This document shows, one piece after another, positions 45,601 through 48,600 of a stretch of 64,000 nucleotides of DNA. The stretch is from contig CM119384.1 of assembly GCA_051294905.1 (NCBI GenBank), positions 4,836,001-4,900,000 of the forward strand. The letters run 5' to 3'. Positions within the stretch are counted from its first letter, which is position 1, and every line of letters begins with the position of its first letter. The DNA is from Botryllus schlosseri (lineage: Eukaryota). Both the position numbers and the translations under genes were made by a program. Below the pieces are notes generated by a model. That model did not search any database. It worked only from the letters and a program-made list of their open reading frames with translations, and had not been told where the DNA came from.

Positions 45601-48600
45601 CCGTGTGTGCTTGTGTGTGCCGGTGGTTAGCTTACTGCGCGGTCCGGGTAAAGTCCAGGGCCTGGCCGGGCTCGGCCGGTCCTTCTTCGTACTTTCGCGG
45701 GCGGCCGCGCTTCAGGTGCCGGCCCTTTTTGAACTCGGATTCGTCCACGGTCCAAAAGGAGCCCAGGGCGTCCTCGCACCGGCGGAAACATTTGTGGAGA
45801 GACAGATTTGTCCGAATTGCGCTCTGGGAGTGTGCGGAGCTGGTTAGTAACTGTGTCCCGGGGGCACCCTATGCTAGGGACATTGTGGCGAATAGCACAG
45901 TGGCCAACAACACGCGCTAATAAAAACAAGCCCCCAGCCAATACAATTCCATTTCGATGCAATCGAACTATATAGTCATCGCGTAGTCGAGATTTATCAG
46001 AACTGCGACACCTTTATTGTAAATAGGACATATGCCGCACCCTTGTATTGGTTGTTGTTGTTGTTGTTTTGGAATCCATGGTGTTTTTTCATGATATTCC
46101 TTATTAGGATGCCTGATCCGCCTTGAATAAAAACATGTCCAAGGTCCAGAGGCAGGAAACTTGGTTTTAGTAAACATGCAACCGGAAATTATGACACACG
46201 GGCCTGGATTTTTTTTGTACGCAGTCGATTTCTAGCATCGCGTTTACTTGTCGGCCTTACCCACCAACCAAAAGCGCACGACAGCCGCCCGGTGCCCTAT
46301 CAATCGTCCGTTTCGTTCACGAACACCGTCACGGACGAAAAACCAACCGTCACCGCATCGAATTTCCAGGCCAAACAGAATCATTTTCAGATCAATGTCG
46401 TACGCGTAATCATCGGATTCGGTTGATTATGTTACGTGCTTGCAACGGGCTACGCTGAAGATATCACGTGATCACGATTTGCAGCCCGGCCTAGAAATCA
46501 TGTGTTTCTCGACACCGCAAACCGCGCGATCGTCTTACCCTTGAGATCAGCTCGAAACGACATGCAGGATGCGTTTTGCCGATATACGTGTAAGAGGGTG
46601 TGTATAAACCAGAGGTGGTCTGGGTATTTATCGTTGGTACTCAATTAGAAGTAGAGATTTCAGATCAAGTAATAAAGTATGGCCTGGAGCTAAAACTGAA
46701 AGTACCCCTAATCGTTACTGATCACATCAGCTCCAACTACTGGTGCTTGTAATGAGGTAGACATATTCAAGGTCTCCAACAATTTACAGCATCACAGCGA
46801 TTTGCAAGTAAAAACTGAGTATTCTAGGCCTAGTTTTAACTAAATAACTAAAGCCCGCAGAATACAAGTAGAAGCAGTTTAAAATCGCAACCTCTTGTGC
46901 TAGTAGGGTCAGTAGGCAAAACCTATTTAGCTCTCCGAAAAAGAGCACCTCGTCACTGACCACCTCTGGTATATATCCACGGAAGAGAGGGACAGAGAGA
47001 GATGGGACAGCCATCTATAGTACACTTCTACACCGACACAACGTGTTAGCAGCAAAGAACGCGCGCAACGAACAGGCGCAGTCGCGTGCAACACACGGGC
47101 GGCCATAGCACCGCATCTTCGCATTTACCCAGAGAATTTCTGCGGCCTCCGTTTCTGGTATTCGTTCTCGTCCACGGTCCACACTGCTCCCTTCACGTTC
47201 TCCACGCGCACAAAACACTTATGGAGGCTCAGATTGTGGCGCACGGCGTTCTACAGGCGGACCAAATTGCGGAAATCGGTAAGTAGGTGTCGTCAGGGTA
47301 TTAACGGAGCATATCGTAACGCACCCATTGCTTCCGTTTACGGCAGCCGCAAGTCTAATTTGCTAGCTAGGTAGTGTCACTTTAGGTTCAGCATGTTACC
47401 GTATGAAAGATGCAGAAAGTTCAAAAGTGTTCCTTGTACGCTACCGCAAAGAATATAATGCCGGTTGTACACCACATAAAGGTAATTTGTAGCTAATGTA
47501 ACACGTGTTTCGTATGCTGTGATGCCGCCACTAGATGTCTCAAGGCGAATTTTCGAATGTTAACACGGAATGACAGCGACCGTTCTTGCAGCAGCGACTT
47601 TAGGATCTCTGGCAATCCGAAGTTATCTTCCAGAGCGCAGAAATTACTGAATCTGGTCTTGATCGAAAGCTACTGTCGCACCGATTCCGAAAATATAAAT
47701 ATTAACATGATCAGGCACTAAACCCCCCGGAATTCGCCCTCCAAGTACGAAACACCGGCATTGTCCGAACAATCGAAGAGTCGCAACAGGTCATTGTTAT
47801 GGTCATCTGATTGTTCTGGACAATGCAGATTTTAGATTTTGACAGTGATTTTTCGTCAAAGTCCGGAGCCTGACCATATTTTAATTTCTATTTACGGAAT
47901 CAGCGCGACAACAGCTTTCGGCCCTGGAAGATGCCTGAAATCCTATAGTTGCTGCCGCAAAACCATTCTGACGACAACCTCGGCGAAGCTGCAAAATCGG
48001 TCGTTGCCATTCCATGTTTACATTCGATAGAAAAATGCTATCGAAACTATAGTTCTCGTCGATAAATACTCCTAAATCCTAATCCTAAATTCAAGCCGTG
48101 ACTCTAACCCACATGTTCAACTGCAGTAGGCCTATGCTGTTGAGTCGCATGTTCAATGTTCATATGTACACTGTACAGTCATTGTATTTTGAAAGAAACA
48201 TCGTACGATACCTTCCACGTGGCGGTATTGCGTCGAAAGTAGGCGAATTTTCTCTGGAACCAGTTGTAAATTTCGTTCAGCGTCAGTTGATGGTCGGGCG
48301 TCTCGATGATAGCCTGAAACGTCGCACACGCTCAAACAGAGCTAAACAACTATTGCCGCCGAAAAATTTGGATTTGAATAAAATAGTACTTTACTACAAT
48401 TAAAGAATGGGTCACCGTAAATACTATTTTATTGAAATCGAAATTTTTCGACGGCAACAACTCCGCTTCCACCGGTTGGAATTGAACCAAATTTGGTGAG
48501 CATCGTTTCTATAGACAACCTAACACTTTCATGGGGTGTACTGAAAATTTTCAAATTTTTCTGTTATCCACTTTTTTATAATAAATAGAAACGAGCTTCT

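Follow-up and report, generated by a model that had tools for sequence, protein, structure and literature searches.

The minus strand of the 64 kb stretch of Botryllus schlosseri DNA analysed here (the window) carries the 3' half of a FoxP gene, and in this gene the exon that codes for recognition helix 3 and the wing of the forkhead domain is present in two versions. If the first version, exon A, is the canonical one, is the second, exon B, a tunicate counterpart of the vertebrate FOXP1 exon 18b that can be used in its place? A first-pass annotation of this locus had answered in the affirmative. It had further claimed that the exon switch predates the vertebrates and that two FoxP isoforms are made, and it knew of no description of such a switch in tunicates.

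Layout of the FoxP locus

Behind the constant forkhead exon U, the exons are arranged in the order U > A > B, with exon A located about 1.3 kb upstream of exon B in the direction of transcription (Table 1). The boundary of exon U was placed at 48212-48313, because its first three aligned bases could equally be assigned to the 3' end of the preceding exon. AG acceptors and GTAA donors are present at both exons A and B. Exon B is preceded by CTCCCAG and its donor reads GTAAGC. Exon B itself is an intact frame of 62 codons, composed of a conserved B-type module (45 codons) and a non-conserved acidic/proline tail (17 codons). Its coordinates, strand, phases and peptide had been given correctly in the first-pass annotation. 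The description as a paralogous exon with matching phases, valid splice sites and an in-frame join to 44262-44190 was borne out as well.

Exon A and exon B can each be joined in frame to exon D. Using both together (122 + 188 nt), or skipping both, causes a frameshift with early stops. Thus, the reading frame itself enforces the use of one exon or the other. Within the 64 kb window, tblastn with exon A matched only exon B (E 2e-12, 60% over 35 aa); a third copy of the module was not detected in this search, with nothing else below E 0.6.

Table 1. Features of the FoxP gene in the window, listed in the direction of transcription
Feature	Position	Strand	Details and evidence
First forkhead-coding exon, 3' end	58057..58116	-	Donor GTGAGG follows; RNA contig loose end at 48316 leads here
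Constant forkhead exon U, phase 0 to 0	48212..48313	-	Contigs of three runs join it to exon A; Pfam Forkhead positions 13-48
Exon A, canonical helix-3/wing, 122 nt, phase 0 to 2	47129..47250	-	Joints in X2, X3, X5
TACTAAC branch-point consensus, branch A 21 nt upstream of exon B acceptor	45843..45849	-	Sequence
Exon B, alternative helix-3/wing, 188 nt, phase 0 to 2	45636..45823	-	Sequence, homology, tree
AT-hook-like KRGRPRKYE inside exon B	45686..45712	-	Pfam AT_hook 15.1 bits, cutoff 17.4
AATAAA, candidate poly(A) signal, ~100 nt downstream of exon B donor	45533..45538	-	Sequence
Exon D, 73 nt, downstream partner of both A and B	44190..44262	-	In-frame joining; contig joints for A
Exon E, next downstream coding exon	43842..44035	-	Joint 44190>44035 and contig pieces; translated

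Other parts of the window hold further features. On the FoxP strand and upstream of the forkhead exons, a Ser/Pro/Met-rich ORF of 152 aa (62621-63079, minus strand) may represent an additional FoxP coding exon. Downstream of FoxP, a tandem repeat array at 39996-40663 with nested periods of 31, 61, 92 and 101 nt (64-93% matches) accounts for long plus-strand ORFs that are spurious. The plus strand also encodes, at 4763-6676, an uninterrupted and intronless PARP2-like ORF of 637 aa with WGR, regulatory and catalytic domains according to the precomputed Pfam annotation of its matches. Its best named relatives are a PARP2-like protein of Styela clava (56%) and proteins of Ciona and Phallusia (48%), which places the window in the tunicates.

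Sequence class of exon B

We employed phmmer to compare exon B with 1.8 billion representative proteins and obtained matches to 98 protein clusters at E<=1e-10. From the matched segments a pattern of the B class emerged: [N/G/S] at the start and, further along, [FY]W[TM]VDD.EF..[RG]RH..RGRPRKY. Exon B reads VDE at the place where most B exons read VDD. Annotated proteins with a B exon include FOXP1 of Gekko kuhli and proteins of the nemertean Tubulanus, the barnacle Pollicipes and the copepod Tigriopus, while B-exon isoforms annotated as X9 exist for the wasp Leptopilina and for Branchiostoma. In many annotated proteins the B segment comes straight after ...FAYFRRNAATWK, which means that it is spliced there instead of exon A. 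The Saguinus (primate) model P0014 and the gecko FOXP1 P0042 carry 18b-type sequence with RGRPRK; both match the human exon 18b sequence given in the first-pass annotation, which proved accurate. In four gene models, P0014 (Saguinus), P0015, P0016 and P0020 (arthropod-type B exon), exons A and B stand in tandem within one protein. Since the frame rule forbids A + B in a real mRNA, these models look like annotation errors to which the exon pair gave rise. When the 62 residues of exon B were compared with proteins of 34-108 aa in a word-indexed search, the matches were genomic ORF fragments only, none of them from Botryllus schlosseri, and thus offered no evidence of a transcript.

In FOXP2 numbering, helix 3 of exon B differs from that of exon A by N550S, V552I and H554T, with R553, S557 and W573 retained. 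The changes from Asn to Ser and from His to Thr at DNA-contacting positions had thus been read correctly. N550 and H554 are direct base-contacting residues, and mouse isoform B carries N550G and H554T (Santos et al. 2011, PMC3002244). The codon of Ser550 in exon B is AGC, which is one mutational step away from Asn (found in insects and amphioxus) and from Gly (found in vertebrates). Exon B also contains the B-specific features ED..GSFW, GRH, a six-residue insert and RGRPRKY; that GSFW, GRH and RGRPRKY are shared with FOXP1 18b had been noted earlier. By its sequence, exon B is a characteristic member of the B-type FoxP exons and corresponds to exon 18b/16b of vertebrate FOXP1.

Phylogeny of A and B exons

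We computed a maximum-likelihood tree from the peptides of 101 distinct exons of the A and B types (46 columns). The split between A and B exons received a support of 99/98 and was present in 100% of the bootstrap trees. While exon A of the window was located inside the A clade, exon B was located inside the B clade together with primate and gecko FOXP1. That is, exon B groups with B exons of other animals and not with its own exon A, the outcome that the first-pass annotation had anticipated. Within the B clade it formed a trio with two metagenome-derived animal sequences (support 99/87). Forcing exons A and B of the window together lowered the log-likelihood by 40.5, with an AU p = 0.069 that is not formally significant on 46 columns. 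The six-residue insert and RGRPRKY lie outside the tree scoring, and that both are shared makes convergence very unlikely. An A/B exon pair older than the vertebrates is supported by these comparisons.

A related locus and constraint on exon B

Animal FoxP contigs from the JGI metagenome samples 3300001913, 3300001463, 3300001539 and 3300027611 (L001-L004), which presumably represent host DNA, displayed the same U > A > B order, with a 122-nt exon A, a 167-nt exon B, phases like those in the window and the donor CA/GTAAGC. Exon A of L002 is 97.5% identical to exon A of the window at the amino acid level, and exon B of L001-L004 is the closest relative of the window exon B that we found (81% aa identity over the B module). 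When the FoxP region of the window was compared with L002 by blastn, only exons U (77%), A (90%) and B (77.5%) aligned; the alignments end at exon borders and the flanking introns are without similarity. Differences between the two B exons are distributed over codon positions 1, 2 and 3 as 5, 5 and 21, and 16 codons with synonymous changes only stand against 8 with amino-acid changes. Differences dominated by third positions, together with similarity limited to exons, mean that exon B evolved as protein-coding sequence, and the codon-position pattern and exon-limited conservation indicate purifying selection on it. Disabling variants, named earlier as an observation that would speak against exon B, did not appear in the RNA contigs: the sole variant within its 188 nt is Q54L in the tail, versus five variants in 228 nt of flanks, a contrast that points the expected way but involves too few sites to count.

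RNA evidence for exon use

Contigs of three RNA studies (X2, X3, X5) and one raw RNA run (X13) were placed on positions 43400-48500. Such contigs drop rare forms, and the record filter removes some records. The joints of isoform A (48212>47250, 47129>44262 and 44190>44035) were present in contigs of X2, X3 and X5. Isoform A is demonstrated and dominant in the sampled RNA. Neither a U>B nor a B>D joint was found in the contigs of X2, X3 and X5 or in the X13 raw run sampled at about 6%; at this sampling, the raw run is uninformative, as it left exon A without a single read and exon B with about two. Of the two FoxP isoforms claimed, isoform A is therefore seen through its joints, but for isoform B no joint appeared in this shallow sample, a result that we do not take to refute its use.

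Exon B was covered only by colinear unspliced contigs, 45536-45894 in X3 and 45617-45951 in X5, with a depth of about 12. Beyond the exon they reach into both introns, by 71-128 nt on the upstream side and by 19-100 nt on the downstream side, and some intronic contigs (e.g. 44712-44950) have a depth like theirs. Words of exon B were present in contigs of several RNA-type runs. Its conservation makes it probable that exon B is in use, either at low levels or confined to particular cells or stages.

Several observations concern the RNA data as such. X2 contains 100% of the exon B words, yet no X2 contig was placed on exon B, which may be an effect of the record filter. The unspliced contigs at 45536-45951 may reflect pre-mRNA, a local transcript or, again, the filter. 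Zero depth was recorded in all runs for the intron from 45965 to 46990 (1 kb). Very high RNA contig depth (up to about 295 and about 2990) with strand-switch joints was found at the intronic repeats 45110-45451, 47504-48016 and 48353-48500, and a FoxP intron contains a 39-nt inverted repeat (48353-48391 / 48419-48457). The high-depth repeats look like expressed copies of MITE-like or other transposons in FoxP introns.

Competing explanations

Most probably, exon B is the tunicate ortholog of an ancient, tandem-duplicated bilaterian B-type FoxP exon that is used in place of exon A. The RNA contigs that cross its donor could also be taken to mean that exon B, rather than being a strict mutually exclusive cassette, is an alternative terminal exon, or is used with its downstream intron retained, and that the protein ends ...TRTAQ, without the C-terminal exons. 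An in-frame TAA is found right at the donor (CA/GTAA), the AATAAA lies about 100 nt further downstream, and exon 8 of Drosophila FoxP, the B exon, comes last in its gene, with an intron-retention isoform existing too. However, the same contigs also continue past the acceptor, into intron sequence where a U>B spliced terminal-exon transcript would not extend. The stop at CA/GTAA results automatically from a phase-2 consensus donor and occurs in B exons known to be spliced onward, the in-frame joining of B to exon D is preserved, and no poly(A) loose ends are listed among the RNA contigs. We thus consider termination at exon B unlikely. Exon B might also be a relic whose splicing was lost in Botryllus schlosseri, with the RNA over it being merely pre-mRNA. 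This would fit the sampled RNA, where junction reads into or out of exon B are lacking and its unspliced contigs are as deep as the intronic contigs at 44712-44950. But tunicate genomes evolve fast, so that an unused exon B should have decayed, while its 62-codon frame is intact, and so are the acceptor AG, the donor GTAAG and the branch-point motif, which matches the consensus perfectly. The B module keeps 81% aa identity to distant animals, with third-position-dominated differences and introns devoid of similarity. In addition, contigs drop rare variants, the filter removes records, and all exon B words are contained in X2. Loss of splicing therefore appears very unlikely to us.

An origin of exon B as an independent, lineage-specific duplicate of its own exon A, convergent on FOXP1 18b, has the AU test in its favour insofar as a clade of both window exons is left at p = 0.069. 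Yet 51 of 120 aligned positions distinguish exon A from exon B at the nucleotide level, with 18 of the 40 codons coding for a different amino acid, and exon B has what B exons have in general: the six-residue insert, RGRPRKY, ED for EN, GS[FY]W for GAVW, V552I and H554T. The tree splits A from B with 99/98, the same arrangement exists in another animal (L001-L004), and Santos et al. (PMC3002244) came to the same result as the tree presented here. Independent duplication is extremely improbable on this evidence and close to refuted.

Proposed mechanism

Exon B as an ortholog used in place of exon A suggests the following scheme. Tandem duplication of the exon for recognition helix 3 and the wing would have produced the A/B pair. 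After the constant forkhead exon, B would be chosen instead of A, and exclusivity would be achieved through the reading frame. This frame rule suffices for mutual exclusivity without competing RNA pairing, and we found no convincing inverted repeats flanking A or B that could serve docking/selector RNA pairing. YGCY (MBNL-type) motifs were not enriched around exon B (3 versus 2.2 expected per 200 nt upstream), which speaks, if weakly, against MBNL-like control.

If B is included, the forkhead fold and the backbone contacts would be kept, whereas both base-reading residues would be swapped (N550S, H554T). At the same time, the basic residues that follow the wing, few in exon A, would give way to a longer stretch with the AT-hook-like RGRPRKY. 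By analogy with FOXP1-ES, and with mammalian and fly work, such a forkhead may have a changed or relaxed DNA sequence preference. In human, FOXP1 prefers GTAAACAA and FOXP1-ES prefers CGATACAA (Gabut et al. 2011, as summarised in PMC11701043), and a loss of base contacts in isoform B has been modelled (Santos et al. 2011, PMC3002244). A role of isoform B in stem or progenitor cells, as put forward in the first-pass annotation, is speculation.

The core RGRPRK(Y) is common to nearly all recovered B-type exons, from insects to primates, and the KRGRPRKY of exon B scores under the curated Pfam cutoff for AT_hook (Table 1). Conceivably, this core acts as a minor-groove contact, such that an AT-hook would replace two major-groove contacts in a bipartite binding mode that has existed since the bilaterian ancestor and is used here perhaps in restricted (stem or progenitor?) cells. 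We regard this idea as possible but rather doubtful. If true, the AT-hook contact would give isoform B more than relaxed specificity. This conserved motif of the B exons seems to have received little attention, and no paper linking FOXP1 exon 18b to an AT-hook was found in the literature searched.

Comparison with known FoxP systems

The A/B exon pair was described in Drosophila FoxP and predicted in silico for arthropods, annelids, molluscs, both amphioxus copies and the urochordate Ciona savignyi. The FoxP1 B exon was found in mouse, zebrafish and human, with RT-PCR confirmation in mouse, and the accompanying exon tree placed the tandem duplication at the base of Bilateria, followed by loss of the B exon in FoxP2-4 (Santos et al. 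2011, PMC3002244). FOXP1 is also among the tandem exon duplications that predate the human-Drosophila split (Martinez-Gomez et al. 2021, PMC8373072). A FOXP1-ES-type exon predating the vertebrates and the existence of two invertebrate FoxP DNA-binding variants are thus already known (PMC3002244, PMC8373072). That the switch is older than the vertebrates stands insofar as the exon pair is older and exon B falls into the B clade, but as a new claim it was preceded by Santos et al. 2011 (PMC3002244). The assumption that no tunicate case had been described does not hold, given the in silico report for Ciona savignyi in the same paper. What this locus yields is a correct annotation, according to which a tunicate FoxP keeps both alternative forkhead exons. 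A modest residual interest lies in the Ser550 state, in the expression domain of tunicate isoform B and in the AT-hook-like motif of B exons.

Closest to the window exon B, at 81% identity, are the B exons of L001-L004 and of the marine metagenome protein P0002, which share Ser at position 550, [KR]RCED and GRH with it and form the clade with 99/87 support. Their tails after RGRPRKY differ from that of the window exon B, and the introns of L002 measure about 400-500 nt compared with 1-3 kb in the window.

Human FOXP1 exon 18b and mouse Foxp1 exon 16b resemble the window in that a second helix-3/wing exon lies downstream of the first and the frame is kept. They share with exon B the replacement of N550 and H554, V552I, ED..GSFW, GRH and RGRPRKY, and exon B is 71% identical to the primate model P0014 over 44 aligned residues. 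However, position 550 is occupied by Ser in exon B and by Gly in vertebrate exon 18b, helix 3 is followed by RRCED in exon B and by [VI]RVED in vertebrates, and the tails following RGRPRKY are unrelated. Only in mammals has it been demonstrated that the exon is included in stem or pluripotent cells, is controlled by MBNL and changes the binding motif (Gabut et al. 2011, as summarised in PMC11701043).

Drosophila FoxP-B and the window agree in that A and then B stand in tandem behind a constant forkhead exon, that the B exon has H554T, and that A and B exons fall into two groups. In contrast to exon B of the window, which has lost N550 and has a donor able to join further coding exons, the Drosophila B exon keeps N550 and is terminal.
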